Part shown: positions 1 to 50,093 of the stretch, in pieces
Layout of the letters: every line of letters begins with the position of its first letter
Position numbering within the stretch: position 1 is the stretch's first letter
NCBI GenBank assembly: GCA_963924565.1
Contig: OZ004613.1
Coordinates: 31,310,001-31,374,000, forward strand
From: Ascidiella aspersa
Taxonomy: Eukaryota
Direction of reading: 5' to 3'
DNA length: 64,000 bases
Notes under the pieces: model-generated
The model's database searches: none
What the model was told of the DNA's origin: nothing
Seen by the model: only the letters and a program-made list of their open reading frames with translations
Made by a program: the position numbers and the translations under genes

Positions 1-1722
1 GGTGTGAACAGTCGATGTCGTTTCGTCGTGGCTGTCGCTATAGCAACTGTCGCTCGCCTGTATGACGTCATTTGGTTGATGACGCACCATGAGTGTGACG
101 TCAAACTCCTTGTTTGCGTTGTCATGCATGAACGAGGGCAGATAGTGCTGTGGAATGGACTGCGCATGCGTGTAACTAGTGGAGCGTGACTTCTTCACTT
201 GGATTCTCCAAACAACGACAAGAACCACACCCGCCACCACTAGGAGCGCTAGAACCCCGCCCATCACGTAAACCCACAACGGGAGCGATGACGTCACTAC
301 TTGCGAGTCTGACGTGGTCGTGACGACCGACAGCGTGGTGACGTCATCGCACTGCTCGATGCCGATCTTGTCGGGATGCTGGTATGACGTCACAATGCAA
401 ATTGCGTATCTCGTTTCCGGCGCGAGTCGCCCTATGTGCGTGGCGACACCTGGTGGCAGCGGGAGGATCGTGTAATCGACCATCCACATGGAGGCGGTAG
501 AGAGGCCGCTCTTGCTTGTGACGTCACAGCTCTGACACGACATCTCGCCGAACATGACGGAGAATGTGACGTAGGGAGGCTCTGACGCGGTGCTTGCGTC
601 ATACACGATTGTGACATCATTGGTTGTGACGTCACGCGTTTCGAACTTGTAAGCGGAGTGTGTGCACTGAAGCGCTTCGACGTCGATGTTGTAGAGTGTG
701 ACGTCACTGAAGGCGGGCGGTGACGCGCATCTGACGTTGTTACCGTTAGCGACGGTTGCCATGGTGAACCAGGACTTGAGGTAGATGAGGTTGCAATCGC
801 ATCTCCATGGATTGTCGTGGATGGAGACTGAGGAGGTCCTTGGGATGTTGGAGAAGGAATTCCTCTCGACACTCCTCAACAAGTTGGATGAGAGGTCAAG
901 GGTCAGCAGGTCGGGGAAGCCCCTCAGGGAGCCGTGCGGGGAATCCCCCAGCAAGCTGCTCTGAGCGAATATGAACTGGATCCTGTTGTTTGAGAGCAGT
1001 AGGTCGGTGATGTTGGTGGGGAGGTGAGGAGGGATGTTCTCGAGGAGGTTGTGGCTCACATCGAGGGTCCGGAGCTTGCGGAGACGCAACATCCCGTGGA
1101 TCGATCCAACCTTGAGTTGGTTGAAGCTTAGATCGAGAGTAACGAGGTCGGAATCCTCAGGGAACGAATCATCAGGGATGTTGCTGATCATGTTGTGCTC
1201 CAACCTCAAACTCTTCAGGTTGCCAGGGATACGACGCGGCAGTGACGTCAGGCGATTGTTGGAAAGGTCAAGGTGCTCAAGGTCACTCGCCAGCTCGAAT
1301 GACGTCTGGGAAATCCCCTCATCTGAGAGGTTATTGTCCTCCACGTGGAGTGCTTGGAGCCGATCCAACCCACGGAGCGCGTCCTTGCCAACGTACTTGA
1401 GGTTGTTGTTGCTAAGCGATATGTACGTCAGAGTGTTGGGCAGGTTTTTGGGGAATGACGTCAGGAGGTTGTCGTGCAGCTCGAGCCGCTCAAGCGTGAC
1501 GAGCTTGGCCAATCCGCGCTCGAGAGAAGGCGAGTTGGAAATCTTGTTCCCGTACAGTACAAGCACCCTCGTGTCGCTCGGTATCCAAAGCGGCAGGGTC
1601 GTGAGGTTCTTCTCCTGGCAGTAAACCCTCCCCGGGATGCAGCGGCACTCTCGCGGGCACCCCTGTGACGTCATAATCGATGCGAGCGCGACGGCGACGA
1701 ACAGAAGCAATTGTCGCGTCAT
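1..1722 (-). CDS. FLRT: FLRT-like leucine-rich repeat/FN3 transmembrane protein, paralog A (3' end runs off the window)
   Basis: Hand translation from ATG at 1722 is open for 574 codons to base 1; it is absent from the ORF track because no stop lies in the window. It reads MTRQLLLFVAVALASIMTSQG (signal), CPRECRC...VYC (LRRNT), LxxLxLxxN repeats, DNPWRCDC...RCASP...IDVEALQC (LRRCT), FN3 (LAPETRYAIC), TM LPLWVYVMGGVLALLVVAGVVLVVVW, and tail ...NKEFDVTLMVR. It is colinear with paralogs B and C. Confidence 0.93.
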   Translation of the reverse strand, partial: MTRQLLLFVAVALASIMTSQGCPRECRCIPGRVYCQEKNLTTLPLWIPSDTRVLVLYGNKISNSPSLERGLAKLVTLERLELHDNLLTSFPKNLPNTLTYISLSNNNLKYVGKDALRGLDRLQALHVEDNNLSDEGISQTSFELASDLEHLDLSNNRLTSLPRRIPGNLKSLRLEHNMISNIPDDSFPEDSDLVTLDLSFNQLKVGSIHGMLRLRKLRTLDVSHNLLENIPPHLPTNITDLLLSNNRIQFIFAQSSLLGDSPHGSLRGFPDLLTLDLSSNLLRSVERNSFSNIPRTSSVSIHDNPWRCDCNLIYLKSWFTMATVANGNNVRCASPPAFSDVTLYNIDVEALQCTHSAYKFETRDVTTNDVTIVYDASTASEPPYVTFSVMFGEMSCQSCDVTSKSGLSTASMWMVDYTILPLPPGVATHIGRLAPETRYAICIVTSYQHPDKIGIEQCDDVTTLSVVTTTSDSQVVTSSLPLWVYVMGGVLALLVVAGVVLVVVWRIQVKKSRSTSYTHAQSIPQHYLPSFMHDNANKEFDVTLMVRHQPNDVIQASDSCYSDSHDETTSTVHT

Positions 1723-1769
1723 GGCAACAATAGGTGTTTGTTTTTATTGTTTGTTGTGATAAATAATTT

Positions 1770-1800
1770 CTATAAAGGAGAGAGTAAATAGTTAAAGAAA
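1770..1800 (-). other. 3' splice (or trans-splice) acceptor just upstream of the FLRT-A start codon
   Basis: Minus strand reads tttctttaactatttactctctcctttatAG (AG at 1771-1770), 47 nt before the ATG. Confidence 0.65.
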
Positions 1801-4800
1801 ATAAATATTGGTTTTCCACTAAAGGACAAATTTGTTATGTTCTTACAAATTTAATTCATATTTTCTTTTCCTCTGGCCTTTCTAATCGTGATTTTGAAAC
1901 TTATATTAAAACTGAAATAAAAATAAAGCGACCAAGTATGCATCAGCTGATCAGATATTCCATAAGAGCAAATATATATTCATTTGTCTTGAAATTTGCG
2001 TTTTTAGCGTCACAACATTACAACATATATTCAGGATAAATTCTTAACTAAGTCTCATCCAGTAAGCGGATGAAACTGGTTTCGTTTTAAACTTCAGATG
2101 CTTTCAACATAAATCCGACAAAGACAATTCAGTGAACCGTGTCAAAACATATCTAACACCTTCTTTCCTGTACGTTTGAAATGAAAGAGAACTTGCGAAA
2201 GTAAAAGGAAACCACAGATGTCACTTAAAAACATGTTTTGAAAACACCACTTTGTTCAACTCCATAACATATGCGGAATGTGTTGCACCTTTAAAGTTTT
2301 TAAAAATTAAAGTGTTTTTTCTCAATAAATCAAAGAGTCATAGCTTGAGCACCGCTTCGAACAGGTGCGCTTCCCAAGCTATCAATAAATTTTAGAACTT
2401 TTATCGTCGGTATTAAGTGTTCTGTTGGAGGGCAAGATTCTGTTGTGAAACTCATACCTAGCTAAAATAAAGAGTTGTATATTTTGGGCAAACATCCAGG
2501 AGCCAAATATATAACGTATTTACATGATTAAGTTAAGTTAAAGCACTATCTTTTTTATCTTTCAAGTGTCAGATACTAACTTTTAAATTCTACCTGCAAT
2601 ATCGTTATCAGCCAACTACAAAATCAGTTTAGGTTGAAGCAACTAGCAAAGCACACAACTTTACAATTTCAACAGCAACCTAGTTTTTAAACCACAACTC
2701 CACTCGAGGCGCTTTACATCACAAAATACTCCGAAAAAACAGAGGCTAATTTCAACTATAAACAACAGTTTAAAGATCCTACACATACAACCAACCTAAT
2801 AAACAACCGGAATATTAAAAAGTGCTAATTGCATCACAACTTCTACCAAGAGTCACTTTAATTTTTAAAACCAACTATCCTAACCAGAACTTGCCTTTGT
2901 GCGGAAAGCAATACATGAACAATTAACAACTTTAAAAGCACGGTCCGATTTATAAAACATCAATATAACCAACCGCAATAATATAAAGCGCACATCTCAG
3001 CTAAACTAAATTGACTAATAGCACTTTCTCAGCCGCAAATCGCAGACAAGACTGGAAGCTTAAAGCCTTGATTGAGATTCCCAGGCGAGAAGCACGGAGC
3101 GACTATTAGAAGCTGCTGTGCTTATCGATTAATATCCACGTGTTTTTGACACCGATCTATAAAACCACGCAACGTTGAGAGGCAAGCAATGTACGAGCAT
3201 GTCAGCAGTTATTGAACCGCTCTTCTGTCTTTTAAACTAATGAATCTTCTCATGCGTCTCGTAAATTAAAAAGTTGAACAGACCAAAGATGCCCTTTTTA
3301 GAATTATTGTCATTTGCAAAAGGTGAAAGAGTTTATTTTTATATTGCTGTATTTGTCAGAGCTATTCAGCAAATCACCGTATTTTAGCCCAAAAAAATTA
3401 AATCAAATTTTAAAACGAATGGTCTATAATTCATTGCCGCCTAATATCACTAAATATATATCCTAATATAAAACATACACCCTTCCTAAAGCCATAAGGT
3501 GTATTGCGACAACTGTGTTTATTTCCCGAATTTCCCGTTAAAAAGCACCCGTAAATTTTACATTAACTTCATGGACTTTATTCAATAATAAGTCCCACTT
3601 CCGCAGTGTGAGGTTGTAATTTGCCGAGCTGCTCTCAACTGTGGAAACCTCAGCTTGTTCAATGAACCGAACAAGGTGTGATCTTACAACGAGCGCATGT
3701 GTGCTTTAGCATCTTGTGGTTTTAACACGATTCACAACTTGAAACTAGGGCGCTATGGGATTCTGTGTGACATTATTGCAACACATCCCAGTTGTTTACT
3801 AACTATAAGGTTTTTCAAACATTTTTGAGACTTTAATATTGTAAGAAACACCAAACGAAAGTTTATTTTAATGCATTAAAATGAACAACACAACAACAAT
3901 TTATTTACTTTTAGTTTCTCATAGTGCGATATCGGAGTCTGCTTGGATTGGCACCAAATTGAAATTCGGCTGTAATGTACTTAGTAGCAATAGGCCCACG
4001 CAATTACAATCCTATTATTACTGAACGAAATCTTATTATTACTATACAACAATTAATAAAAACACGATATGTAAGATTTAAACTGATGTCTTGCTTTATA
4101 AAATAAAAGCTAATTACACCCATTGTGTTAAACTATAGTGGTTTCATCTGGGGTTTCATGGAACAATTGTCAAAATATATATTTTTTGCAAAACTTCAGG
4201 CAATCTTTCACGAAACAAACACCAGTTGACAATCATTGCTCTACTTTATAGTACAAACAGAAGACTTTGAAAAATCTAAAACCTTACTCTTTTATGGTCA
4301 GAAAGTAGTTTTGCAAATTAATACGTCGTTCTACTCAGGACTTTCATACAATACGTCATTATATGTGCTTAACCTAAATTTAACAGTCTTTACACAAAGT
4401 TGTAATTCGTCGCCAATCCACGCTTATTTGTTGGTTTTGAGTGAGCGACCTACAAAGTAATTTACGAGAGTGAGTAACTTTCTAGCCTGACGTTTTTATG
4501 AGTAAGTTTGCGTACAAACTGCACGGAGATAAGAGCAACTTAACGCTTGAACGAGTTTCTTCACAAATTCGATCAAGAGACTGGTTTAGTCACGATGATG
4601 TTTTGACTGGACTCGAGTCCAAATAAGATCGCGCTAATAGCGAAATCACTTTATGACGTCACATTCAACATCGAACATTCTTGTTTTAGCGAGTTTTTGA
4701 TGAACTTTTTTTTCTTTTCATTTAAATCCAAGGCGGCAATTTAATCAAATTACAAATATAAACGCTTTTTTATTTTTTAAACTCCAAATTAGGGGCCACC

Positions 4801-7081
4801 TTCAAAAACAAGATGCTGCATGCAATAAGGTACTTACTAGTGCTACTGTGCCTAAGACAAGTTCTTTAAAAATTAGTTCCCAATTAAACGCTTATACGGT
4901 CAAGAAACCTTATTATCAGTCCTCGCCTAACTATTACATTAACCACATTCCAATCAGTCTAATTAAAAGCAATCTTTCCACTAAAAGAGCCGTGTCTCTT
5001 TTACCAGAATCCAGTAACTTCTAATTTAAGCGGAACTAAATATTTCGCACGAGGCCACTTCTAGTAAAGAAGATATTACGAGCCATTGGCTTGTTTTTAC
5101 CAACTACAAACCCCGGTCTACACGAAGCTAATAGTCCCATACCCCAGCATACGTTAAAACGCAAGCTCTGTTGCTGTATTCATAAGCTTGACTGCTTTTG
5201 CTGCTTTTAAACTACAGTTTTGCCGCCTTGTCCTGGTTTCCCAGGTTTTGAAAATAGGTCGTTTTTACTAAAAGCAAGGCGACGATTTAACTTTTCACAA
5301 AACAAGTAAAGTCGAAAGGTTATTTTGAATGGAATTAAGTAATTTTCGTGACATGCTTAATAACTTTTGAATTAACTGTTTAACAAGTTTTGTTTAAAAG
5401 GAAATAAGTTATACATGAACACACGACAAATAAGAGAACTTTTGCATTTCCGTCACAATTTGACTAAGTTTTGCAAAGAGTCAAACTGTTTAATTCCAAG
5501 ACATTATTTATGATCGACCATATTCTCTCAACTTCATTATATTGCGTTCGACTTGGCATTATTACCAAAACAAAGCCCATTGTCTGCTCACAGTGAGCCC
5601 TAATTCAAAGCACGCACAGAAACTGAACAGAGCTTTGCTGTTTTAGCGAGAGACAAAATAAACCTCTTAAAATTTAACGACCATTCCCGGCCCAACCATA
5701 ACCAACAGTAGCTGCCGTTTGGCCTATAGCGTGTGAGATTGAAGCATTTGGAACTGGTGGATTGTTTGGATAACTAGACCTAGGTGCAGTAGCGAAACTA
5801 TAAATCATAAAAAACGCCGTTCTTTCTTAAATGTGCTAAATGCTTTGGTTCATGCGGTAATTGCAAGGTATTTTATAAAAGCTTAAACGTTACGCCATTT
5901 TTATTTTTTAGCTTCTTCCTGTTTTGTCTTATCGACAGCCGCATTAAAAACAGCTCAATAGATTCACTAGTTTACTAATAACAACCACGATAAATAAATA
6001 TTCTCACATTAAAACACGTTTTTCGTTTCCTGTGTTCGCGTCTATAGGCTTGGGTTATTAAATAAATTCTGAAAGGCGCATCTATAAAATAACCTTTTAA
6101 AACACCGAATTTAAATGAAAAAATTACGCACCACCGCGTAAATGTCACCAGCAATTTATCATTTAAACACAAGACAACGGATGGTATTTAACATGTTAAA
6201 GCGCGTACAACGGTGGTTTCCAAGCAACATGTTTTCACCGCTGGTCACTTCTCCCATGTCTAGTTAAGGTTTGTCAGCAAGTTGTAATAACCTCAACCTC
6301 CCACAAAGTGACCCAACATTTTCAGACGATTATTCACCGCGGGATGAACCGTTGTGAACCAAACAAACCCCTAATTCCTACAAACTTTTACAAATATCTT
6401 CGTTGTTTTGAATTGAATTTATATTTAGGACCATAAAACGACCAAGGTGATTTTACGCATCACACAAGCACGGTATTACTGTGCGTTCCGTTTTGCGTAA
6501 TTCTAACAAACTTTAAGCAAACTAGGATTTTACAAATAAATCCGTAATTTCAAAACTTATATAAACTTTTAAACGCAGTAAAACACTCCAGAACGACTTT
6601 TACGTGATTTACTAACTTTTCCTGATGACCAGCTAAGGCAGACTTCATATATTTGTGCAATTATTTTACCGACTGTCTGTTCATGACCCTGACAAGTTCC
6701 ATTAACATCGAGCGAACAAAGTATTGCGCCACAATCGAGACGCTCGTTCACTTCGATCGATAAAAAACTCTTTACAATCGAGAGAAAGTGATGATTCGAA
6801 AAGTCACTTCAACTTTGAAGATTCCGACTCAACAAATCACAAAACTAAACGCGTTTGAAATAAAGAATTTAAACTGGAATCTCCACTAAATATCTAATCT
6901 CTACAACATCACATTTTCTAATTATAAAACTTTCTTCTGTCCACCCTTTGTGATGTAATGAATGGGCTTCTCGCGACCAGCAACTGTCGAGGCAGCTGAA
7001 GTCGACTGGCCCACTTCACCCTTCTCTGTATCGTCACACCGCGCGATTGTTATCGCCATAATAGCTCCTTTTTTCCCCCGC

Positions 7082-7093
7082 GCCGCCATTTTG
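7082..7093. promoter_or_regulatory. YY1-type motif within a CpG-rich island
   Basis: GCCGCCATTTTG matches the YY1 consensus. Related cores occur near 29770, 45142 and 49915. Motif match only. Confidence 0.3.
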
Positions 7094-10018
7094 CCGACTC
7101 TGTGCAAACATCGCGTGAAAAAACGCGGCGTTTAAGGCAGAGGCCTAATTGCTCGCACAATTTTACGCTCGTCTTAATATTGTCAGACGCCTGCCACACG
7201 GATAATACATCATACTGTGACGTCACAAATGCTTTGCGAACTCAGTTGCCATCCTATTTGTGACGTCATATGTATTTTGCTCGGAATTGTAGTTTTTTTC
7301 GCAAAAAATAAAAAACGCTCTGCAGAAATGCGTTCTACAAAAATCAAAGCACGAACTTTTGCTAAAACTTTATTAAAGCCAAAAACTTATTTTTGCTCAA
7401 ATGAAATTGCAACTGTTCAATAAGTTTGCACTGAACGTTTTTAAGTTGTTACTTTCAAACAAATGTAATTCAATTTATACAAAGCACAAACTTTGTTAGT
7501 TGTGTGTTGCACCAAATTAAATAATCATTGTCAATTTTAAAAGGCCGATTTTTTGTTTCCTATACCAGGAAACTTGTCCGTTTATCAACAGCTTTATAAA
7601 TGCATATGTTCAGCAACTTTGCAAGGAACATATTTCATGTAGTTTGGCGCCCAACCTATTGTGACGTCACAACAATTGCCTCAACTGCAATAATGCCCAT
7701 TTTTCGATCGGCCCGCTTATTGGATACCGGGATTTGTTCACTCAAGCGTGAAATACGACGAGGGTTCACGCAGCGCTCATTGGATATAACCACTCCCCGT
7801 TGAACAATGGGAAGCGGTTCGATTAAGTGTGACGTAATAATCACTTGCAGATGTCTCTGGTGTTGTGACGCAATAATGCAGGGACCGATTTCTCCAAGTG
7901 ATAACAATTATCTCTTGCACGTGCCGCCATTGTGATGTAACAGCTACGGCATTGTGACGTCACAGCGGCGTGGATTGAGTTTAAACAAACAGTTTGACGC
8001 GAGAATTTCAGCCGCGAATTATTGGATTTGTATCGCGGCGAATTAATGCGACTTTCCGGCTCAAAAGCGCGATTTATTTCCCAACAAATTTGCTTCTGCT
8101 GTTGGATGTTCAAGGCTTAATTTCACTTATGGGTCGTTTCCGTATTAACAAGATCAAAAGCACGTGATAGCGATGCATTATGAGGTCATAAAGCTTCCTG
8201 ATTAAAATATATGGCGTCTTAGGAATTATTCCCAAATGTATTGGTGATTGTTTGATGCGCTTCTTGGAATCTTGCGAATCGATAAACGCATTAATGTCGA
8301 TGCAATCATGCATTTAGGTCGAATGTTCGATTTTGTGGATGAATACATTAATCAACCACCTTGGGCTTCATCAATATTACAACATAATAATAGAAATGGT
8401 TCTTCTGGTGCAAACGAAATTATAAACCGACGTTTCGTCAGCAGATACCAGCTTAATCGAACAATTTTGCGTTTTAGGTTTGAACTGCCTTCGCAGGCAA
8501 CTTACCTACGGCGGTAAACAATATTCTATCATTTTTAAGTAAGTGATATGTGGTTAATCACAACTACCTGTTGCAACTGAAGTGTCACCCCTTAATTACC
8601 TTTAGAAGCAAAAATACCTGAGTCTATTGCATTAGCCCTCCATCACATTCTAACGTAAATGATCACAACTACTTACATTTGTTTGAAAATAATTTATTTG
8701 TGTAATTCAGAAAAATTAACTTTGTTTACACCAGAATATCAATTGCTATCTATTAATGATGTCTGGTGGTGGTAATTCCATCACTACACAATGTATAGCA
8801 AGATATCGGGGAATGTAGTCGCTTCTATGTCCATATGTTGTTATGTTTCGTAAAAGTTCTGGTAATATACTTGAATTCTATTCTAAAAATTCTGCGCCAA
8901 GAAATTTCGTATACGCAACTTAAAAAAAAAATTTACTCAAAAATTAAAAATAAAACCTTGGCAACGAAACAAGTTTCATTTTCGAAATTGCTTTATTCAA
9001 CGGTTTACCGGAGATTTCGTTTACCTTATATTGAACATTTTTATTGCGACCTTCCATGTGACAAACGCTTTTTCGTCCGGATCAATTTCATCGCGATTTC
9101 AGCTCCGCTGTAAGTGATTTGTCACGCCACAAAGGCGTGAAACGCTTCGATTATGCACAACAATTGATTGACAATCGAAAGTTGAGGGGCGTGCCACAAA
9201 TATGCCATTGTTTACGCACAATGGGGCGATGTCGACATAATCCAGATCGCGCGCAATACAAGAATATTTTCGAACAAGAATCGCGCCAACAATTGTGCAG
9301 GGATTATGACATCACAGTTAAATAAGCTGCTTGGTTTTAGAAGAGCATCCATTGTTAGAAAGCGTCGATATTTTAAACACGGCGATCTGAGCGACTTCTA
9401 AAGCGACAAGTTCAACTCGTTTCGACAAAACCAAGTTTCTGACGATGTTGACTTTAATTTGATTGAACGTGTGAAACAAATTGCGCTTTTCACAAAAATG
9501 TGGGAAATATTTGCACGCGCTACGATTTTGCCTTAAAGTCACGTTTTAAAAACAGTCGGCACTATATGTTGGTTTGGGAAACATTAGTGTTATTTTAAAG
9601 TAAATTAGTTACCTAGATCGTTTTCTAAATTTTCAACTGCCCTTTATAATACTATGTGCTTCCACAAAAAATCAGCGAATTTATCGGCCACAAGAGCCAG
9701 ACCTTATTAAAATTTAGGACAAGTAAACCTTAATTGCAATATAATACAAATAAATTTTACAATCTAAAAAAATGTTTAAAACCATTGGTATATGACAAGT
9801 TTAGCTAACAGTTCATACCAAAGCAGTTGCTTTCAATTGAACTCCGTGTTAGACAGAGTGCAAATATATTAAGCGCCTCAAACATTGTGTGAACTCCAAT
9901 CTTTTTTTGTCGAAGGTTGATTAACGTGTTTGTAATCCACTTGACAGCAACCTCCGATTCTGGCGCTGACTTATTCATGTCTCGCCTCCAACAAATACTC
10001 ACCTCACTTCAAACTGTC

Positions 10019-10050
10019 GGGGACTGGCGGGGTATTTGGGGAAAAGTGGG
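10019..10050 (+). other. Putative G-quadruplex motif
   Basis: GGGG-actggc-GGGG-tattt-GGGG-aaaagt-GGG. Confidence 0.5.
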
Positions 10051-11458
10051 TAAAAATATGGACGAAAAAATGGGCAAATTTGCCAAAAATGTGCTTTATA
10101 ATGCCATCTTTGTTGATTTCTAGTATTGCCTTTTTGTTAAAACCAATTTTTATTTAAATATCTTTATTTCAATAATCTAGCAATTTTGTGTAGTATTCTT
10201 AGGGAAGTGAAACAATATGTATGTAAGGAATATCCCGCAGAAAATAAAATGTAAAATTAAATGGATTCTTAGCTTTGAATCAGTTGAATATTTAGACTGT
10301 TTGTTGGAAAACAATTAAATACCACGAATAATATCCTAAAATAAACAAAAAATCTTAAAAAAAATCCATTTTTTTAACAGCTAAATTTTTATTTATTTAA
10401 AGATTTCACTTAATTTCAACTTAAAGACAATTTCTGACAAATAAATTAAAACAACTTTGCATACCGCCAGTTTAAATTACTAGGTCATTAGTTTACTGTT
10501 GAACATTCATGTTTAGTCAGACTACAACCTCGTCATACTTTCACCCAGCGTTGACAAATCATCCTAATATAGGCGCCTTAGGCTGATCTGGTGTAACCTT
10601 ACCCATCTGGCCTCCACACACCCTCACAACACGATTATTCACCAAAAACTCAACCTTATCATCGTGAAATACGAACCTTGACCTTCATGGAAAGTATGAT
10701 GTTGCCCAATTCACCATTTTTATCGGGAACCCACTTAAAATCACATTTGTCGTATCAGTAGCTAAAATATCACTTAACTCACTCGCTGAGCTTATTTCTA
10801 AAATAAATAAAAATTGTCCACTGTTAATTTCGTCAAAATAAGCATGAATAACAAATCAAGTTTTGAAAACTGATTTGGACGCAAATTATGCTAAAGCATT
10901 ATAGAATATTTAAAAGGAAGGCACAAGTAAATAAGACTAACTATTAACTTTATATATTTGCAGTTGGAGCGTCTTTATTTGACATTAAAACCCTTTTATC
11001 GATTGCTAATTATGCTGACTGCGGATTCTAACTTTTATTATTAATTTGTTAAATTTTAAAAACGAATTAGGACTCACTTGCGGCTTTAACTAGGGGCGTG
11101 ATTGTTTCCTAAAATTACTATAGAAAGCCGTAACAGCAGTAATTTGGTTAACCTTATACGACCAACGGTAAATCGCTTACCCATTTATAGTATAAAACCT
11201 TCCGAAAAGTCTTTCTAAAATAAGCGCGTTTCAAAGATATTTAACGTGTCCATTAAGTCAGACGATTGACAAATATGTGTTTAACGCAATAACTGAGATC
11301 TAGCCCTCACATTGATCAACGATAACATATTAAAGCACATTAAAAACCTAATAAAAGCACATTGAATCTCTTCGGAAAAGTTTACTAAACCATTCCAAGC
11401 CATGAATAAACTGATAATTTTGTATAAGAGACCACCAAGACACCACGAATACTACCAA

Positions 11459-11515
11459 CCCCTAATCCCCTCACCCACCCATGTTACCCCTACTTACCCC
11501 AACCCTACTTACCCC
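11459..11515 (-). other. Putative G-quadruplex motif (8 runs)
   Basis: Plus strand cccc-taat-cccc-tca-ccc-a-ccc-atgtta-cccc-tactta-cccc-aa-ccc-tactta-cccc. Confidence 0.55.
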
Positions 11516-27669: not shown

Positions 27670-27703
27670 TTTATCTTATCTTATATTTTTGATTTATCTA
27701 CAG
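27670..27703 (+). other. 3' splice (or trans-splice) acceptor upstream of the FLRT-B start codon
   Basis: ttatcttatatttttgatttatctacAG, with AG at 27702-27703, 6 nt before the ATG at 27710. Confidence 0.7.
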
Positions 27704-27709
27704 ACGACA

Positions 27710-33765: not shown

Positions 33766-34480
33766 CATTTTATGGTTTCAAAGCACTGCTTAATGCTTAT
33801 GTGTCCGACATTTCAAGCTTTGTCAAGGATTTAATGCATCGTAAAACAACAATTAAATGTCGTGAAGCTAAAACAGCAGAAATAAAAAAATAAACAAACC
33901 ATAAAAATATATTGCACTGTTTCCTTGCAATGGCTTCAGCCAAATTTATCAAAAATAAAAAATATATAACACTTTTAAAATTATTTTAAGCATTATGTTA
34001 AGACATTTTAAACTGTGCTACAAAGTTTAGACTTGTTACGACACAATCGATTTCATCTCGACCTTAATTATGTAGGTTAATGATGTAATAAAAGTGTTTG
34101 TTAACCCAAAAAGTCCCATAAATCAATCGATAAATACAAAACACTTCACGTGGTAAATAATTACGACCCACGAAATTAAACATACGATGCACACAATAGC
34201 GATCGTTATGATAGCGTATTCCGTATGTTACGTCATAATGTAATCCACAATTGACACCATTTTAAATTTTGCAATCCGCGAAGGGTTGCATTAACAGATT
34301 ACAAGCATTATGAATCACAATTCAAGTATTATCTCTGACAATCGTCATTATGACAACTGGAATAGAAGTCGAACAAAAATGTCTCGATTGTTATCTCACA
34401 AATGCCATTGTTACGTTATTGAAAGGTATATGAAACTCTTTAGAATTGTGATTGCGACGTCACAATTAAGTTAAAAAATG

Positions 34481-40400: not shown

Positions 40401-42897
40401 ATAAAACATCGCTTCTGGATTTCACCAGATCACATCCTATTTACATTTGGAAGTTTTGCGAAAGTAAACTTTAGTTGAATCACTCCGGACAGAAGGATTA
40501 GGCTTGTTCTAACTAACATTGTCTCGCTGTCACTGCGTCACAATCGCGCACTATTTCGTCACAGAGCGACGCCGGAGCTAGACCGAGCATGACATCTTTG
40601 TTTTCACAGCTCGAGATGCCAGGTTGCAAGCGAGTAAAGTTTAACGGAAGAATTCAGTAAAACCAGCTAATGCTGCCCCTGGAGGCTTGAGAAAGAGATT
40701 CTTGAGGTTTGAGAGAATAGAGGTTTTATTTTCCTTATCACTGAGGATTATTTGAGGCTAGGAAGCTATTTTGCAGGACAAACAGATTTTAACGGGTAAA
40801 ACTCGCATTTTAATAAACTTTTTCAGAATAATAAAACACTATATTCGATAAAATCGTCATTTCTCTGTTTACAAGCGTTTTGGCAATACCTCATGACGTC
40901 ATCAGTTTCAAAATATTTAAGCGATAATAAAAGCAAAAAAACGTTAAAAAAGCTAAAAGTTTCAGAATAGTTTAGGTAGCAATGTAATCTATCATTTGTT
41001 GAAAGTATTCTACCGTCAATTGTGGTTTGTGTCTAGTTAGCCTAGATGTGTAATTTCGACAAGTATGCCTTTTGTGTCCAAATGGTGTTACTTATAAATA
41101 CATGACGCAAATAACGCATGAAATTTCATCGGGTTTCAAGAAAAGTGAAACATCATCTACGTTCGGTTTTCAGATTTGGTGTAAATCACCAATCTATCGC
41201 AATAACGTTAAAAAGTATTTCAAAGCATTTCTGCCATATTAAAGCACACATTGCGTCAAAAAACTAAATCCAAAAGGTTTCCAGAAATTAAAAAAATGTG
41301 AATTATTACCTGTTTATCAAATTAACCATGAAACACGATAACTAATAATGGCATGATGCTAAAAAATGTGCATTCAGGTCTAGAGTATTTAGGTACAATC
41401 TATATCAGCCTTATTGCTTTAATATCAAGTGGATTGTATTTGTTTAACTTATCGGAAGTCTATGTCGTCACAGTTGAGATTGTGATCTAATAAGTGTCTT
41501 TATTGCGGCAATAATAGGAAAGCGCGGGATCCGATTTCAACAAATTTAGATCCGAGATAATGCTTACTTAATCCCCGCACTACCACAATGCCGCTTTGAT
41601 ACGTCACAAAGCTTGCTTGCCTATTAAATTTTATTTTTTGAATATTATTTTTTTAATTAAAGCATGACATGGCCATCTTGCAATCTAAAGTTTATAGCAA
41701 ACTCCTAAAGCTTGCTACTTGTCATGCTTAGTATTTTTAAAGACTGTCTCTGTATTTAAGTTCAACGTGGACTCCTCCAGAAAACCTTTTATCCAACACG
41801 TAAAAACATTTTCCAAATGGCTTATTGATTATTTGTGGCTTCTATCAATAGTTAAAAGCCAAGTTGGCTGAGAGATATTAAACTTCATTTAACCTGCAAT
41901 AATGAAGTTCACATGGGTCATAACAAACTCTAAAAGGGGTTTCATTTGATTCGGTAAAGAGAATATACTTGCAGTTCTTATTAAATAGGTTCATTACTGT
42001 TCAGTTAAAATGAAAACCCACGGAAGCAGATGTTTATCAACTTGTAGCGACCCCGTGACAACTTGTATCAAGCGCCGGCAGCTTTTAACACGGACTGAAT
42101 CAATAAAGTCTCTCGCTGGAAACTTGTCGTCGCTTCGAGTTGGCAGCGAGCTTATGGAAGTTCATTATTACATCATAAGCGTTCCAAGCTAAACTAGACG
42201 CTCCCCTGAGCAAAATGTCCCCCTGGGGCCAGTTTTGCCCCCCCAAGGATCGAAATTACCCCCCGGAGATTTGAATTGAAACTCACTGTGTGATTTGAAA
42301 ATGCGAAACGCCGATGGTTGAAGTCACGTGATGATCGAACATCTTTGTGACGTAACGATTGACTAGTGACGTTTTTCCGACACCTGCAAAGCAAACAGGT
42401 CAAATGTGAACTTGATTATTACAAAAATAACGACAAAACTGACTTGCATTAACGGTATAAGTAACTGAGCGTAATTATAAATCTAGAAAATAGTTACATT
42501 TGGAAACTTTGACAAATAAATGCAAGCTATTTTTGAAATAAACAACTTTCGCCGATTTGCACAAAACGAAGAATTTTAATTTGTTAAAACCCGGTGCTTT
42601 TCCGCCCTACCAGTCTCAGTTACATTGTTACGTCACAAAACCTACTGTTACCTGATATTGTAGCGCTTCTTGCGCGATCTGGGAACTTTTTGCCCCGGTT
42701 TTGTGCAACTAATCACGATTGTGCGATAATTATATTGTTTCTTAATTATAGTGGAGAATTACAAACCGACAACTCGTCGAAATCCCGCTGTCCGGCTTAA
42801 ATTTAATCCCTATTATGACATCACAATTCGCGTCGCGCGCTTTCCTACCTTGGTTGCCGATCACCAAAACTTTGGCAGTCGCTCTTTTTTGCGCCAT
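34481..42897 (-). CDS. Rab-family small GTPase of the Rab5/Rab22/Rab31 group (RabX1-like), 200 aa, 7 coding exons
   Basis: complement join(42849-42897, 42287-42383, 37077-37146, 35819-35912, 35519-35548, 35326-35454, 34481-34614). All introns are GT-AG, phases match and the total is 603 nt. Protein: MAQKRATAKVLVIGNQGVGKTSLVNRYVTKMFDHHVTSTIGVSHFQITQEIGDHDVTLQIWDTAGQERFRSLMPMYYRNSAAALLVYDVTSKDSFVALKEWASELQNNVEENIILFVVGNKTDVPVVERQVEKQEANDFADSVGAHFREVSALSSHGVNDVFLDLCIKVVHMQQLLHQKEEAQASIGPSMTQESNQCCGT. G1-G5 boxes and a C-terminal CCxx prenylation motif are present. Confidence 0.93.
34957..35004. repeat. Short direct repeat in Rab intron 6
   Basis: atttatgttggacacaatttgt occurs twice. Confidence 0.8.
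38094..38141. repeat. 20-bp tandem repeat in Rab intron 2
   Basis: (aaaagcaatactgtatcttt)x2 plus aaaagcaa. Confidence 0.85.
39736..39768 (+). other. Putative G-quadruplex motif containing two GGATTA sites
   Basis: GGG-ttt-GGGGGG-attaagt-GGG-attaaggt-GGG. Confidence 0.45.
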
Positions 42898-43955
42898 TGC
42901 AGCAGAAACTTCGATTGTTCCGTCACAACTGCCAATATGCTCAGTTGGCACGAAGTGCTTTGTTACGTCAATAATTAACCGATCGCTCTCTGTGTTCGGA
43001 GGGCGATTCTTCATTGTGACGTCACAGTGCAAATTGTGCCGGAGCGCGATGTTGGTTTGTTGAGGGATTAAGTGTGGCTGTGATATTTAATTTGAATAAT
43101 TGTAGGATAGTGATCGGTTGAGTTAGTCGCCAACGCATTTAATGTTGAACCTACGTACATGGTTCGTTGTGTAATGGCTTCAAATAGATTGTGTCTGAGC
43201 AGAAATATTAAATAACCTGTAAATTTTATATTTCCTGTGTTTTTACATTTGATCTGCTTTTACGTTTGTATTTGTAGAGCACCGTTAAGTGCGATAATAT
43301 AACGTACCAGATAACACATTGGTGCTAAGTTCTTGGTGGTGTAAGGGTCATATGGCATAATTCGCAACTTTTAAAGGCTGTAATTGTAAACGTTTACCAG
43401 CATATACATAAATTGAGAATTCAGACCAAAATGATTTTAAGTTGTATGTGTGGAATATATATACCAACATCCATACAAATTAATTTGAACTGCGAACGTT
43501 TTAACTCAAATTGACATATTGGTGGTATATTAGAATGGTGAAACAGAATAAATATTGTCTCATTCGCGAAAAAGCCTTTTAGTAAATCTGTTAGCAAATG
43601 TGTACATCAACAAATCATTAAAACACAAAAAAACAAATTTAAAAACTTTTAACAAAATCTGTAACATTGTTCAAACATTTCGAATAAATCTTTATCCAAT
43701 GAATTACAGATACGTTATAAACAAATAGTTAGTGGACATTGTGGAAAATCACAAACATACGATTGTTCCAGGTTGTTTGAAGTCGTCAGTTTAACAAGGG
43801 ATTGTTTTAAGCATAAGTTGTTGTTCGCGTGTAGTTTGTTTTACCGGGAGGTTGTGCTTTGAAGTTTAAGAGTGATTGGAATTTACTCCCTGGAAATAAG
43901 AGCCGTGTTAACTAAAAACACACGGTGTGGATAGACAGGGGTGTGGTTTACACGA

Positions 43956-43985
43956 GGGAGGGGTAAATGGGGTTTAGAAGGGGGG
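43956..43985 (+). other. Putative G-quadruplex motif in the Rab/FLRT-C divergent intergenic region
   Basis: GGG-a-GGGG-taaat-GGGG-tttagaa-GGGGGG. Confidence 0.5.
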
Positions 43986-45703
43986 TTGAAACCCTTTTAT
44001 GGGGGTAAGTAGACTCCTACCTGTACGCATAATGCACTAAACTACATAGCTGCACCTAACCTGTGTTAAAATTGATATTAGTGTTCTCAAGGGTATATTT
44101 ATAACTAAGTATTTTGTAAGTTGATATTTATATTACTTTACTTATGCCAGGAATGTCACTGTTACATTTTGTGTCCATTAGATAATTTACCTTGACCAAT
44201 CTAGTTTAGTGCAAAAATTATAAAGAGTTGTTCGGTTTCAATACATTGAAGTGGAATATACTTTCCGTAGTAGGTTTACTCGAGGTGTTTTTACGAACTG
44301 TGATATATTTGTTTAAAAATCCAACTACGTTTTCATTCACACTTGTTTAACGCGTTGCAGAAGTTTTAATTAGATCGTCACGTTAAAATATTATCAGCAA
44401 TAAAACCAGCACCTTGGAAATAAAACAAAAGTTCATATATTTGTTACGAGATATTTTTTTTTCAACGATAACTAACTTTTACCTTCAACCTGTTTATGTA
44501 TATTGTGTTTTAATTAAATTGTTACGTTTTATCCCAACTAGCAATAAAACCAGCACCTCGGGCATCAAGCGCGACCGTAGTTGGATTTCCTCGTGTTCTT
44601 ACAAACACGGCGAGAATATTTGATCAGTCAACAGAAAGTTAAGGTTCGTAGCGACAGTTGTAAGTACCAAGGAAGAAAGTGTTTGAGAAGGTAACGGTTC
44701 GTAAATACGAGAAAGCGACGAAGTAATCGCGGTTTGGCCTTTACCACCAACAACTGAAGTTACCTGCGACATAAAAAAACAAAAGTTGAGCAGATTGAAA
44801 TGATGTAAGAGGCTTTGAGTGATTGGCAGATGCGTGATTAGCTAAAGTAACTGCGCGAGAAGCATTCGCTGCGTGGAGCTGAGAGGGAAAAAAGATCGCG
44901 TCGGTGAAATATCTGCCTCAACTTCGCTCAATTTGTCTGCCGCATAAGCTGATGTGTGTGTGGGTTGGTGGGCTGGTGGTGCTTAGTTTTATTGCTTCTC
45001 GCGTCTTGATTGTTTGCGCGATCGTAAATCCACTTTTAAGAACTTGTGTTTTGCGCGGTTTGTTGTTTGTGCTGATTGTTCGGTTTGTTTACGTCACAAA
45101 TTGACGCGCGATCGAAAATCGATTGGATTTGACAGTTGAGGCAAAATGGCGATTCCAGGTATAATTGTTATTTAGGCAGTTTATTGTTCAGAATCACATA
45201 TTTATTAATTTGAGTATTTTCTTAAAACAAGCGAGTTAGAGTGTTTAAGTAAAATATCGTAGTTTAATGTAATAACAGGTACTCAAGGTTTGGTCAGAAA
45301 TGCTCTTTTTTGGTTCCGCTTAGTTGTATTTTTTATCAACTCGGTTTTTATATTCAGAAGTTGTAATGTTTATTGAATAAGTTAAATTTTCAAAAGTGAA
45401 ATTTCGAAACTCTTAAAACATAGTTTTTTACTTATTTTAGCTAAACATGTGTGGCTAGAAACTTGTACCTAATAATGATGTCGTATTGTTAGCAACATAT
45501 GAACTTTATCAAAGTTTTATGGATTATGAGCGTTTAAAGAAAGTACCAGTTAGTTTCGAGCGCTTTCGTTTGATTTCACTTCGATACAATTCCCGAATCT
45601 TTAAGCGGTGTCAAATTTCACCTCAGGGAAACAAATCGATTCCGCGGGACTTTAGTGCTCCAAACCCCGCCGAGCAACTTGGCGATTTGTGGCGCCTTTA
45701 TGC

Positions 45704-46009
45704 CAGTGTTTCTCACCCATGGGTCGCAACCAATAACTGGGTGGCCGTTTGATTTGTTTGGTCGCCGACTACATTAATTAATTAATTAAAATAGTTCAAT
45801 TTATTAAGATTGGTTCTGAGCAACATATCTCTAAAATTTACGAGGATTGCGAAAGCATTATGAAGACATGCCCCATATTTGCTGCTATCTTAGGACTTAT
45901 TTGTTCACTTTAAGCTTGAAACAAGTTCGATAGGATAATTAGGTCGCCAAAGCTGTTAAACTTACACTTAGTATTTAGGCCGCCACAAAAAAAGGTTGTC
46001 AAAACACTT
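45704..46009. mobile_element. Degenerate hAT-like MITE, family 1 copy, abutting the FLRT-C acceptor
   Basis: Starts cagtgtttctcaccc and ends ggttgtcaaaacactt (imperfect TIR). Internal similarity to 33459-33765. Confidence 0.6.
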
Positions 46010-46023
46010 ATTTATTTCAACAG
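46010..46023 (+). other. 3' splice (or trans-splice) acceptor upstream of the FLRT-C start codon
   Basis: atttatttcaacAG, with AG at 46022-46023, 18 nt before the ATG at 46042. Confidence 0.7.
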
Positions 46024-46041
46024 ATCAACAAAAAAACAAAA

Positions 46042-49000
46042 ATGAAGCTAACAAAAGTAGGGACTCTATCTGTGCTGACGCTGCTCGTGACGTCATTAGC
46101 AGTGACGCAATCGCTGCAGGACTGTCCGCGCAAATGCAGATGCGACGAGCGACACCGTACGGTCTACTGCCAGGAGCAGCAACTACCAGTTGTCCCCTAC
46201 GGTGTACCCCCCAACACCAGGGTGCTGCACATGCAGGATAATGACGTCATAAACGGACCTATTGTCGACGAGAACCTGTCACAATTGACGCGATTGGAGA
46301 AGTTGAACATGTACGGCAACCAGCTGACAGCTGTACCAGCAGGTCTCCCAGCATCTCTCGAGTTTGTGTCGCTCAGGAACAACAGGATCAGGTTCATCGG
46401 GAAGAATTCACTCCAGGGATTAACTTCGCTCGCTGAGATCTACTTGGACTCAAATAACATCACAAACCTTGGTCTTTCAAGCCTTGCGTTCAGCGACACT
46501 CACAACCTGCAAGTACTCGTGCTCACTGACAACCTACTCACCTCGCTACCCGAAGGACTTCCGAGTAGTTTGCGAGTTCTCAGACTAGACTCGAACCTCA
46601 TCCAAAGCATCTCCAAGTCGTCCCTCCTCCATCTCAACAAACTCTCACTCCTCGATCTTTCATACAACAAGATCAACCAGGACTTCATCGCTAGAGGCGC
46701 TATGCTGCCCCTCACATCTCTGACGTCACTAGCGCTTGACGTCAACCAGCTCACCGAAATACCCCCCCAACTTCCCCCCTCGCTCAACGAACTCACGATG
46801 TCACGAAACAACATCCGCTACATCTACAGCAGTGATGACGTAGACGATAATGACGTCATGGTTGGAAGTTTGAGCTCGTTGCATCAACTGATGACGTTGG
46901 ATCTGTCGATGAACTCGTTACGTAGCGTCCAAACTGCGTCATTCGCCAACCTACGTCACCTAGCAACGGCCAGCTTCCATGGCAACGCGTGGGTGTGCGA
47001 TTGTCATCTCGATTATTTCAAACAATGGCTCATTGTCACCAGCTCTGTGCTTAGCAGCGAACATGACGTCACATGCCAAGCTCCACCGAGGTTTAGTGAC
47101 GTCACACTTAACAGCATCGACGTCGAAGCGCTAAAGTGCGGTCAACAAAGCCTACAATTGACCAGTGTGACGTCACAAAGCGTGGTTGTTACGTGGAAGC
47201 ACGAAGAATCGAACCCCCCTTACATAGAGAAGCGTCTCTTGTATGGACCCCTCACCTGCCAGAACTGCTCCCTCGACCCTCGTGACGTCATCAGTGACGT
47301 CACCGACCTCGTGGACCAGTACAGTCTACTGGATGTGACGTCACAAGTGCTTAACAATCCCGAAAACGCTGAGATCGAGATCGACCGATTAGTCGCCGGG
47401 ACGCGATACTTGGTCTGTTATTACGTCACAGAGCAAAAGATCGCGGACATCGACATGAACCAGTGTGTGTATGCCTCGACCAATCAGCTTCCTCCGTCCA
47501 GTCCCCCCGCTCACGTGACGCAACAGACCACGTGGCCCCCGCTCTGGATTATCCTCGTTTGTTGCATCACAGTACTCGTCGTCTTCATTTGCATAATCGC
47601 AGTCGTCATATTACGTCAGCGGCGATCACTCAAGCATGGCCACAAGAGGAGCCCAGGAGCGCGTGGGAACCGTGACGACTTTTACTTCCCGGAAGCTTAT
47701 ATTCCGGGTTACACGTACGCCCCAGCGCCCCCCAGTGGCAGCTTCGGCACCAACTTGAGCGAGCGGACTTACATGGAATGCGGGGAGGCCGACGCGTCAC
47801 TAGAGTTTGACGTCATGATCAAGCCTAGCGACGTGACGACACCTAAACACGTGATGACGTCACGGTACGAGGACGTCACGATCGAAAGGTGGGTTGATTT
47901 TGCGAAGAACATAATGTTTCCGGTAAATTTTAAGTTGGTTAAACTGCGGCCATTTTAAAATAAAGATATTCGATTTTATTTTCAAAATTTCTCTTTAAAA
48001 ACATTTTTGATCTTTGCTCACTAAAAAGAAATGGAGTGAAACGCAAAAAACGAGGTTTAGAGAACTTTGTATAGAACTCAATTACATAATTAATCAATAT
48101 TCATGCAAAAGTAACTCACAAATCAAATCTAGACAATAACCATTGCCAAATTTGGTTCCACCCTTTGAACAATATTCCTTATTTTGCGTCACACCCAAAC
48201 ATCGATAGTAAAGGTTAAACTCCCTGTCTAGCACATTTAGGTAAAATTCCTAAAAGTTGGGTCAAAGTACTTGAAAATCAAATTCCGGTCAAAATTACGC
48301 GAAAGTGCTTGAACTAAATATGATCGAATTATGCAAACCCTTACTTAATTGCGATGAACCGCAGTAAAATCGCAGCAAAACAACCCACCCAGCCTACATT
48401 ATATGCTTCTATGGTCAAATCTCCAAGTGTAAGTTCAAGTGCTCGCCCACTCTCAGTATCTGCTGTAATTTCCTCCTTTCCACAAACCAGTGCTCGCCAT
48501 AATTGACGCCTTCACCTAATTGTGATTTTAGGCGCCGAAGCCAAACCCGTACACTACAGTGTACAGACTTGCTAGTTGCTGTACATACGCAGTTTTAAGG
48601 TTTTTCCTGTAATTGGCCCAGAGTAATGTTTTGCAATGGCGCCTGTTAAATTTTATGGCCAATTTTTTTATTTAAATGTTTCTACGATGCTGTAAAAACT
48701 TTTTACAGTTTTAAATTAGAAAGTAAAATTGTCGTTTCAATTTTGTTTTATATTTATTTTCCCTAAAAAGCTGTCAGTAAACTTACTTTGTCAATATATT
48801 TATTTTGAACAACTCCAAATTAAGGAAATTTGGCAAACGTTTAATAACCACACTATTTCTATGTCCGATTGAATTGTTTTACATCTATTTATCTTACAAT
48901 AATAGAACCCCAATATAATTCATTGCGAATGTTCTAAATCAATGTTTCAAAGTGTGTGAAAAGTAAATCACCTTATAGGAATAAAATTAAAACGTTAAAG

Positions 49001-50093
49001 GAAAAAGAATTTTACAAACGAGAGACTAAAGTGCCAACGACCAATTAGGTTCTTGGTTTATTTTTTTGCTGAAGGCAGTAGGCTTTTTAACTGTTGAACA
49101 CCAGCATTTTACAAGTCGAAAAAAGTTGACAGAATGTCGCATACAACCTTTGTTTGATTCGATTTTCTATATATCCAACAATAATAAAACCCTAACCCAA
49201 TTTCACCAAAGTTATATATTTTTGCGTATAGTCATAATACAGAGCAATGCCGTGCTGGGTTGTCAGTAGACTTACCTCCAGCGAAGCCATAAAAGCTTTA
49301 AAAGCGACGTAATTTGAAACCAAAGCGCACATTTTTCGCGGCCAGTCAGGAAAGCTATTAAACCTAATAAATCTTCGCTGCATTTCTTTCTGCTTTTCCA
49401 TCACAACCGGGCTTTGTTGATTATGAAGGTTACCTCGCTGTAACACGAGTTTTAATAAGGCTTAATCAAATACTCACTTCTATTTGAGCAAGGTTCAATT
49501 ACATAATGACACTACATAGAGTGCATAACCTGCTCAAAACAGCAAATAAAAACTTCGAGTCATAAATCAAGAATTACAATTTTCGCAAAACATCAAAACG
49601 CCTGTTTAAAATTTCTTTTCAATTCTATTTGACATAAAATTCAAAATTCGTGAAAAACAGACAAAAGTGTCAAATCCAGTCAACTGTAAATAACAACAAT
49701 AGGTTTATGATTATTGTTTCTAATAGACACCTTGATATAAACCAACGTTTACATAAATTGTTCTAAATAAAATATATATATTTTTTTGATTTAGTAAGAA
49801 TATCAAAGCCCATGCAGAAGTATGTATCATTTTAAACGTTTCAAATAACTTTTTATTCGTTTTCAACATGTTTTGATTTAAATATTAGAATTCGTTTTCC
49901 CGCCTAAATCCCGAGCCGCCATTTTCTAAACCTTTCCATTTTAAATTCCAGCAATCCCCGATTAAGCTCCAACCCAACTCCGTCAACCAATCACAACGCC
50001 ACAATCGCATCACGTGACGACCCCTATCTAGATGACGACACGTCAGCGACAATGACGTCACGACTACGTCATGAAACCGGGATTTTTGTCTGA
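46042..50093 (+). CDS. FLRT: FLRT-like leucine-rich repeat/FN3 transmembrane protein, paralog C (662 aa, 2 coding exons)
   Basis: join(46042-47888, 49952-50093). Exon 1 carries signal, CPRKCRC LRRNT, LRRs, GNAWVCDC LRRCT, FN3 and TM. Donor AG/GTGGGT at 47889 and acceptor ttccattttaaattccAG at 49951 are phase-2 compatible. Splicing gives ...IESNPRLSSNPTPSTNHNATIASRDDPYLDDDTSATMTSRLRHETGIFV*, which matches the paralog B end DDTGVYV*. Confidence 0.92.

Follow-up and report, generated by a model that had tools for sequence, protein, structure and literature searches.

The palindromic octamer TGACGTCA, the core of the CRE/ATF site at which bZIP transcription factors normally dock, is packed into the coding sequences of three neighbouring FLRT genes of the ascidian Ascidiella aspersa so densely that it fixes codon choice and has changed amino acids, a situation that is very unusual for an animal and for which any cause can at present only be inferred. 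The stretch of DNA analysed here, referred to as the window, comprises 64,000 nucleotides (GCA_963924565.1, contig OZ004613.1, positions 31,310,001 to 31,374,000) and ends 349 kb from the end of its chromosome (C7). Within it the exact word occurs 56 times, whereas 100 dinucleotide-preserving shuffles gave a mean of 0.74 and a maximum of 4, and none of the 100 reached 56. The word occurs 11 times in FLRT-A (minus strand, 1722..1, its C-terminal end running off the window start), 13 times in FLRT-B (27710-29563, plus strand) and 13 times in FLRT-C (46042-47958, plus strand). The observation made in a preliminary description of this sequence therefore holds, although the count of 14 given there for FLRT-C was too high by one. 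The related TTACGTCA/TGACGTAA variants (the T-variant) occur 35 times in the window against 2.6 expected, including 5 in the FLRT-B coding sequence and 2 in that of FLRT-C. The sequence itself is not an assembly artefact: three DNA runs (X11 raw reads, X1 and X2 contigs) cover positions 25001-31000, and none of 9 differences in the FLRT-B coding sequence, from the 40 examined of 111 in all, lies inside a perfect 8-mer. Four reads of an RNA run (X12) lie on the FLRT-B coding sequence.

It is clear that the enrichment is not a by-product of codon usage. In 2000 amino-acid-preserving codon shuffles per gene, which would have refuted the preliminary description on its own terms had they reproduced the counts, the mean counts were 0.66 for FLRT-A (maximum 5), 1.21 for FLRT-B (maximum 6) and 1.15 for FLRT-C (maximum 7), or 3.0 for the three genes together against 37 observed, and no shuffle reached the observed count. 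Permutations of codon order gave 0.08-0.09 per gene, and uniform synonymous codons likewise failed to reproduce the counts. GC3 of FLRT-A is 0.74. Both stop-free frames are used, 15 sites being read as xTG-ACG-TCA and 22 as xxT-GAC-GTC-Axx, giving the peptides [L/M/V]-T-S and D-V-[I/K/M/N/R/S/T] as previously described. Of 25 GAC-GTC pairs, 22 carry the out-of-codon T...A flanks, and 15 of 19 ACG-TCA pairs are preceded by TG, which also excludes an effect of codon pairs or tRNAs. The landscape is all-or-none, in that one-off neighbours of the word in the coding sequences are not enriched (13 against 17.0 expected, 7 of the 13 being the T-variant).

The effect extends to the proteins. Peptides that permit the motif number 14, 17 and 20 in FLRT-A, -B and -C against about 2 expected, a 7-9-fold excess, while FLRT relatives from other species (the six closest, P0001-P0006) have 1-6. 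The motif fills 11 of 14, 13 of 17 and 13 of 20 of these permissive positions, or 37 of 51 (73%), regardless of protein region. The 37 sites fall in 31 alignment columns, of which 27 are private to one paralog, two are shared by A and B, and two are shared by all three; four columns are family-conserved LTS or EFDV peptides. Of the 37 sites, 28 are lineage-specific and were gained by substitution, mostly at variable positions. FLRT-C is sister to P0001 in the tree, yet only 2 of its 13 sites have a permissive peptide in P0001, and one Gly/Ala/Arg-to-Asp change arose in parallel in paralogs that split before the species did. Only 4 of 26 motif-core residues of FLRT-C sit in columns invariant among its four closest relatives, against 174 such columns among the other residues, so that the word overrides amino-acid choice mainly where the protein is variable. 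Because 34 of 37 sites align without internal gaps, and 32 of 37 align to at least 4 of 6 ungapped relatives, footprints of transposon insertion or excision were rejected as their source.

The word is more fully described as a 14-bp dyad, TTR-T[G/T]ACGTCA-YAA, with the perfect form TTR-TGACGTCA-YAA, in which the symmetric flanks extend 3 bp on each side of the core and no further; this lack of wider conservation also rules out a hidden repeat family in the window. Given CGTCA, the other half-site is TGA in 56 sites, TTA in 35, TTG in 12 and CTA in 10, with all other triplets at baseline, while TTACGTAA occurs 0 times against 2.2 expected. A general correction of quasi-palindromes was rejected, as no other palindrome is among the top over-represented 8-mers.

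The unit affected is a chromatin-scale domain rather than single genes. Positions 1..52000, together with about 1 kb to the left of the window, form a stretch of roughly 53 kb that is not CpG-depleted (CpG o/e 0.87-1.39 in every 2-kb bin) and that holds 90 of the window's 91 intact sites (56 perfect and 35 T-variant). The 19 kb further left have a CpG o/e mostly of 0.4-0.9 and 0 perfect sites. On the right the domain is bounded by the CpG-depleted NOSTRIN gene body (52001..62000, plus strand; CpG o/e 0.54-0.71, 0 intact sites), in which F-BAR-like exon frames lie at 55494-55727, 59689-59886 and 61586-61789. There is no perfect site anywhere in 51311-64000, and hence none in the NOSTRIN exons at about 55-64 kb, in agreement with the preliminary description, although these lie beyond the 1-50093 to which it assigned its finding. 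The idea that methylation erased the motif from NOSTRIN was rejected, as the 4 deaminated-type words there lack the dyad flanks and are not relics, while about 12 flank-bearing relics lie in the domain that is not CpG-depleted. The same description placed the palindrome in two Rab exons; of two Rab coding exons on the minus strand (35255..35948, with approximate limits taken from open frames only), the one at about 35802-35948 carries a single perfect site (35861), whereas that at about 35255-35509 carries two TTACGTCA-type variants (35296 and 35473) and not the perfect word. The word and its variant, with the same dyad flanks, also occur in about eight non-coding GC-richer islands without long ORFs, one at 6925..8116 with 4 perfect sites and 1 variant, and the others at about 12.3-12.9, 16.3-17.9, 26.1-26.9, 36.4-36.7, 38.6-39.0, 42.2-43.1 and 50.0-51.6 kb. 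Non-coding site density rises from 0.12/kb below 30% GC to 2.1/kb at 45% GC or more, compared with 8.0 intact sites/kb in coding sequence, and the five 1-kb flanks of the coding sequences hold 0 perfect sites.

Across the genome the octamer is about 8-fold over-represented (45,059 against 5,750 for the reversed word, or about 1 per 6.8 kb), and the perfect 14-mer occurs 240 times against 2. The T-variant 14-mer occurs 469+409 times against 10+4 for the control, but 19 of 20 copies examined, from chromosome centres, lie in 5 repeat families, one of them with TATATA 3 bp away, and part of the genome-wide count of the octamer may likewise be carried by repeats. Generic AT-rich non-coding DNA holds the word at about 9 times expectation (23 against about 2.9 in 240 kb). 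In a 200-kb genome sample all 14 perfect sites lie in the 142 one-kb bins with CpG o/e of 0.8 or more, and none in the other 58. Only 4 of 50 perfect 14-mers lie in the central thirds of two chromosomes (C1 and C2), and sites are about 3 times denser 1 Mb from chromosome ends, with 16 in 40 kb of distal sample against 27 in 200 kb of interior sample. Not every gene in DNA of this kind, nor every developmental gene, carries the word: the 972-aa DNMT1 exon has 0 of 3 permissive sites filled, five of six homeobox exons have none, a mucin-like frame of 3333 aa has 0 of 129, and it is absent from transposon ORFs.

The interpretation offered in the preliminary description, that a DNA-level code overrides amino-acid choice in a subset of genes, is partly supported. 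What the analysis establishes is that a lineage-specific force acting on DNA sequence, and not on codons or peptides, fixes the dyad wherever a GC-richer segment of a domain that is not CpG-depleted, and is presumably unmethylated in the germline, can be brought to it by point substitutions, and that in the FLRT-Rab domain it has created most of the positions it fills by replacing amino acids at weakly constrained sites. None of the mechanisms suggested there, namely chromatin marking, methylation protection or mutational drive, was shown, and nothing shows that the motif is a code. The further suggestion that this may be a known ascidian trait was not supported, as literature searches, which did not extend to the supplementary tables of tunicate genome papers, found no description of it, and FLRT relatives from other species lack the peptide signature. 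That the word is read by a dimeric ATF/CREB-type bZIP protein is inferred from sequence logic alone, from the family's core, dyad flanks and graded half-site tolerance (TGAC > TTAC > TTGC/CTAC), which resembles that of CRE/PAR and CRE/C-EBP hybrid sites; the genome has 12 bZIP_1 matches, with no expansion of the family. One plausible but unproven explanation, preferred here only tentatively, is that weak selection, effective in a very large population, favours dense homotypic occupancy of this methylation-sensitive site across particular unmethylated domains. In this view coding sequence would be the most durable substrate in a fast-turning-over genome, and near-neutral codons and residues would be recruited until the permissive positions are nearly saturated. 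The avoidance of invariant columns is consistent with a weak force, the confinement to DNA that is not CpG-depleted with a methylation-sensitive site, and the TATA-adjacent repeat copies might reflect use as a promoter-type element. However, 11-13 CRE sites inside one coding exon have no known function, and a pure enhancer model predicts neither the roughly fourfold higher density in coding sequence than in GC-matched non-coding islands nor the empty flanks. Other exons inferred to be unmethylated lack the motif, which leaves the target set unexplained.

A repair- or conversion-based drive, in which a sequence-specific step in mismatch repair or meiotic gene conversion favours the palindrome allele in heteroduplex, is a possible though less favoured alternative. 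The word would then spread without benefit to the host, fastest in recombining, unmethylated distal chromatin, with selection on the protein only slowing it at constrained residues. The all-or-none landscape, the filling of permissive sites regardless of protein region, the parallel replacements in paralogs, the enrichment in generic non-coding DNA, the regional pattern across four genes of two families plus intergenic islands, and the distal bias suit such a drive, the last two at least as well as they suit selection, although the distal enrichment could merely follow gene density or methylation. No machinery was found in the two profile searches made: C5-methyltransferase (PF00145) matches are DNMT1 on C2 and one two-exon gene on another contig (C8), and the only Vsr (PF03852) match lies on a bacterial contig (C53). 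A methyl-C-directed repair bias is unlikely in a domain inferred to be unmethylated, the graded half-site tolerance looks like transcription-factor binding rather than enzyme recognition, and transcription-factor sites that open chromatin are expected to be under-transmitted at hotspots, not over-transmitted. If this doubtful reading were nonetheless correct, an animal genome would carry its own highly iterated palindrome, a selfish DNA word that rewrites coding sequence and proteins and the first eukaryotic counterpart of HIP1 and uptake sequences.

A function in RNA, through pairing of the self-complementary word in mature mRNA or binding of an RNA-binding protein, is very unlikely. Density is highest in coding exons, and the FLRT-B segment 28600-29563 folds with z = -2.47 against 20 shuffles using stems between motif copies, but this excess follows trivially from having repeated palindromes. 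The favoured variant breaks pairing (U opposite C) whereas the wobble-compatible TGACGTTA/TAACGTCA occurs once, the 1-kb stretches downstream of the FLRT-B and FLRT-C stop codons hold 0 intact sites, the word is common in non-coding DNA and occurs in repeat families, in one of them next to TATA, and dyad-symmetric flanks are what a dimeric DNA-binding protein needs. An origin in codon usage, codon-pair preference or selection on peptides such as LRR LTS or N-x-T/S sequons can draw on the family-conserved columns and on the preference for GAC, GTC and ACG outside the motifs as well, but it is refuted by the shuffles and the fixed out-of-codon flanks, and the peptide signature is lacking in relatives while the word is enriched in non-coding DNA.

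If a short DNA word can be fixed in animal coding sequence against protein-level preference, then part of the fast protein evolution of this lineage is driven by DNA-level forces and not by protein function, which would affect tests of selection (dN/dS, convergent substitutions) and ortholog alignment in this clade. It also offers a natural system for asking how dense transcription-factor sites, DNA methylation boundaries and recombination interact, whether motif-directed drive exists in animals, and how far the degeneracy of the genetic code can carry a second message.

HIP1 (GCGATCGC), the highly iterated palindrome of cyanobacteria, is likewise an 8-bp GC-containing palindrome far above chance across a genome, lying inside coding sequence with non-randomly placed one-letter deviations, and is proposed to be created and kept by a DNA-level process rather than by protein needs, a model of the drive kind (Elhai, 2015, PMC4390886). 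The present word differs in that it occurs in an animal with meiosis and chromatin, is a classic bZIP site, is confined to particular domains inferred to be unmethylated rather than spread genome-wide, reaches 1 per 150 bp in the FLRT coding sequences, and has no word-specific methyltransferase or Vsr-type nuclease among the matches on the animal's own contigs. The DNA uptake sequences (USS/DUS) of Haemophilus and Neisseria also accumulate in coding regions and bias the encoded peptides, preferentially where the protein tolerates it (Findlay and Redfield, 2009, PMC2817400), but that drive works through uptake of DNA by competent bacteria, a route that does not exist here, and uptake sequences are not palindromes read by a dimeric transcription factor. 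In animals, CRE/ATF sites share the core word TGACGTCA, and exonic transcription-factor sites ('duons') constrain codon choice slightly, but those that are known are sparse and do not visibly reshape proteins, whereas here there are 11-13 exact palindromes per 1.8-kb exon, most permissive positions are filled, and amino acids have been replaced. The M26/CRE meiotic hotspot of fission yeast, bound by Atf1-Pcr1, is also an ATF/CREB-type word inside coding sequence that acts on the DNA in the germline, but hotspot-activating words are expected to be eroded by conversion and not to accumulate.

It is clear that the exact word TGACGTCA is far more frequent in this region than its composition would predict, with 56 occurrences in the 64-kb window against a mean of 0.74 and a maximum of 4 in 100 dinucleotide-preserving shuffles. 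Eleven copies lie in FLRT-A (minus strand, 1722..1), the end of which runs off the window, thirteen in FLRT-B (27710-29563) and thirteen in FLRT-C (46042-47958). The observation made in the preliminary description, that this palindrome is written many times over into the FLRT coding exons, is borne out, although its count of 14 for FLRT-C is one too many. Fifteen of the coding sites are read as xTG-ACG-TCA and 22 as xxT-GAC-GTC-Axx, whereas the third frame would be a stop. Three DNA runs (X11, X1 and X2) cover 25001-31000 and confirm the sequence. In the same interval, at 30303-30310, a decayed copy of the motif is polymorphic at its second letter, where the reference has T and all reads of X11 and the contigs of X1 and X2 have G (30304 T>G), the same G/T axis that separates the perfect word from its favored variant.

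The condition named in advance as one that would overturn this observation, that codon shuffles preserving the protein reproduce the counts, does not hold. Shuffling synonymous codons within each gene, which retains both the protein and the codon usage of that gene, gives 0.66, 1.21 and 1.15 sites for FLRT-A, FLRT-B and FLRT-C, with maxima of 5, 6 and 7 in 2000 shuffles each, against 11, 13 and 13 observed, and permuting codon order gives only 0.08-0.09 sites per gene. Of 51 peptide positions that could hold the word ([L/M/V]-T-S, or x-D-V-[I/K/M/N/R/S/T] with x ending in T), 37 do so. Of 32 Asp-Val pairs, 25 are GAC-GTC, and 22 of those 25 have T before and A after, while of 31 Thr-Ser pairs, 19 are ACG-TCA, and 15 of those 19 follow TG. 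The unit under pressure is therefore the 8-mer across codon borders, and not codons, codon pairs or peptides. Words one letter away are not enriched, with 13 observed against 17.0 in shuffles, and 7 of these 13 are one particular variant.

The consequences extend to the encoded proteins. Permissive peptides number 14, 17 and 20 in the three FLRTs, against about 2.1 when residue order is shuffled, with maxima of 8-10 in 2000, whereas the six closest relatives found elsewhere (P0001-P0006, 31-48% identical) have 5, 6, 3, 5, 4 and 1, and two fish FLRT2 proteins have 1 and 2. The 37 sites occupy 31 alignment columns, 27 of which are private to one paralog. Thirty-four sites align without internal gaps and 32 align to at least four ungapped relatives, and the word therefore arose by substitution rather than insertion. 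At 28 of the 37 sites at least one core residue is not shared by half of the relatives. In the phylogenetic tree FLRT-C is sister to P0001 (support 97/96) inside a clade with P0002-P0004, while FLRT-A and FLRT-B fall outside it. The Asp in F-[S/R]-D-V-T is present in all three paralogs, where the relatives have Gly, Arg or Ala, and was therefore gained at least twice. The force is nevertheless not overwhelming, as only 4 of the 26 core residues of FLRT-C lie in columns invariant among its four closest relatives, against 174 such columns among the remaining residues.

The flanks of the word reveal a 14-bp dyad, TTR-TGACGTCA-YAA, with no information further out. Only one single-letter variant is strongly enriched, TTACGTCA/TGACGTAA, with 35 occurrences against 2.6 and with the same flanks, followed by TGACGCAA (12 against 1.4) and CTACGTCA (10 against 0.7). 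The double variant TTACGTAA occurs 0 times against 2.2, and the AP-1 heptamer TGACTCA once against 8.1 expected. One perfect half-site combined with a graded second half-site is the logic of a dimeric bZIP protein and matches the ATF/Jun-type consensus, although the assignment to such a protein is inferred from sequence alone. All of the top over-represented 8-mers of the window derive from this word. A Sox-like word, CCATTGTT/AACAATGG, occurs 19 times in the window against 3.9 expected.

Ninety of the 91 intact sites (perfect plus T-variant) lie in 1-52 kb, where CpG o/e is 0.87-1.39 in every 2-kb bin. The predicted NOSTRIN body at 52-62 kb has CpG o/e of 0.54-0.71, no intact site and no flank-bearing deaminated relic, and the 19 kb to the left of the window is likewise CpG-depleted and without a perfect site. 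The unit is therefore a stretch of about 53 kb that is not CpG-depleted, holding three FLRT genes, a Rab gene with 1 perfect and 2 variant sites in two exons predicted from open frames, and about eight GC-richer non-coding islands. Just left of the window, in CpG-depleted DNA, lies a second Rab-type exon on the minus strand (…VYDITNEKSF…; C7:31,307,310-31,307,687, positions 17310-17687 of a joined 20-kb segment), which has Asp-Ile-Thr where the Rab of the window has the motif-bearing Asp-Val-Thr. Within the 53-kb domain, non-coding density rises from 0.12/kb below 30% GC to 2.1/kb at 45% GC or more, while coding sequence has 8.0 intact sites/kb and the five 1-kb flanks of the coding sequences have 0 perfect and 2 variant sites. 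The genome has DNMT1, and CpG depletion is read here, by inference, as germline methylation.

Across the 308.6-Mb genome the 8-mer occurs 45,059 times, against 5,750 for the reversed word, and the palindromic 14-mer 240 times against 2. In 200 kb sampled at 5, 10, 15 and 20 Mb of five chromosomes there are 14 perfect and 13 variant sites, and all 14 perfect sites lie in the 142 one-kb bins with CpG o/e of 0.8 or more, in surroundings of ordinary GC and mostly not in long open frames. The word is nevertheless lacking from several coding sequences examined. The 972-residue DNMT1 exon, with CpG o/e of 0.94, has 0 of 3 permissive sites filled; this single 2.9-kb exon (positions 1407-4325 of C2:20,077,501-20,083,500) encodes the CXXC, BAH and catalytic parts of the protein. 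Five of six homeobox exons and three transposon-like ORFs also lack the word, as does a CpG-poor mucin-like frame with 129 permissive sites, a single open frame of 3333 residues, consisting of Thr/Ser/Gly/Val-rich repeats and with CpG o/e of 0.51, which runs through all 10 kb of C2:15,000,001-15,010,000.

The distribution along chromosomes is also uneven. The window ends 349 kb from the end of chromosome C7, and of 50 listed perfect 14-mers on chromosomes C1 and C2, 4 lie in the central thirds, where 16.7 would be expected. Four 10-kb samples taken about 1 Mb from chromosome ends hold 16 sites, against 27 in the 200 kb of interior sample. Near the start of C1 (71092-71862) the motif recurs at a strict 70-bp spacing, so that a tandem repeat carries it. 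The T-variant 14-mer is commoner (469+409 against 10+4) and richer in the center of C1, and nineteen of 20 central copies retrieved (C1:18.0-22.5 Mb) sit in five repeat families, as judged by eye. At least five different repeat families there each carry the exact 14-mer TTGTTACGTCACAA, and in the largest, with 8 of the 20 copies, a TATATA box lies 3 bp from it, an arrangement like that of a CRE-TATA core promoter. Mobile elements carry the site too.

What the analysis establishes is the excess of the word, its action as DNA across codon borders, its gain by substitution and its restriction in this region to DNA that is not CpG-depleted, whereas the reading of the site by a bZIP protein, the methylation state of the domain and the force that fixes the word are inferred. 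The interpretation in the preliminary description, of a DNA-level code that overrides amino-acid choice in a subset of genes, is accordingly supported only in part. The explanation preferred here, tentatively, is that a bZIP-read site is fixed by weak selection for dense occupancy. A repair or conversion drive of the HIP1 kind is somewhat less favored but possible, and the all-or-none landscape, the regional pattern and the distal position all speak for it. Against such a drive, no word-specific methyltransferase was found in searches of the assembly for C5-methyltransferases, and the only Vsr match lies on C53, a small contig of 89,847 bases that is bacterial, with McrB/McrC-like restriction genes, the Vsr nuclease, a NUDIX hydrolase, GreA and carbamoyl-phosphate synthase arranged back to back at 43-49% GC (C53:76001-84000), and that derives from either a symbiont or a contaminant. 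A role at the RNA level is unlikely, since the favored variant breaks pairing, the stretches downstream of the FLRT-B and FLRT-C stops have no sites, and the modest folding excess (z = -2.47) follows trivially from repeated palindromes. A by-product of coding is very improbable, and some weight must be reserved for an explanation not yet conceived.

Full-text literature searches found no description of such a trait in a eukaryote. The closest analogues are bacterial, namely HIP1 (Elhai, 2015) and the uptake sequences (Findlay and Redfield, 2009).
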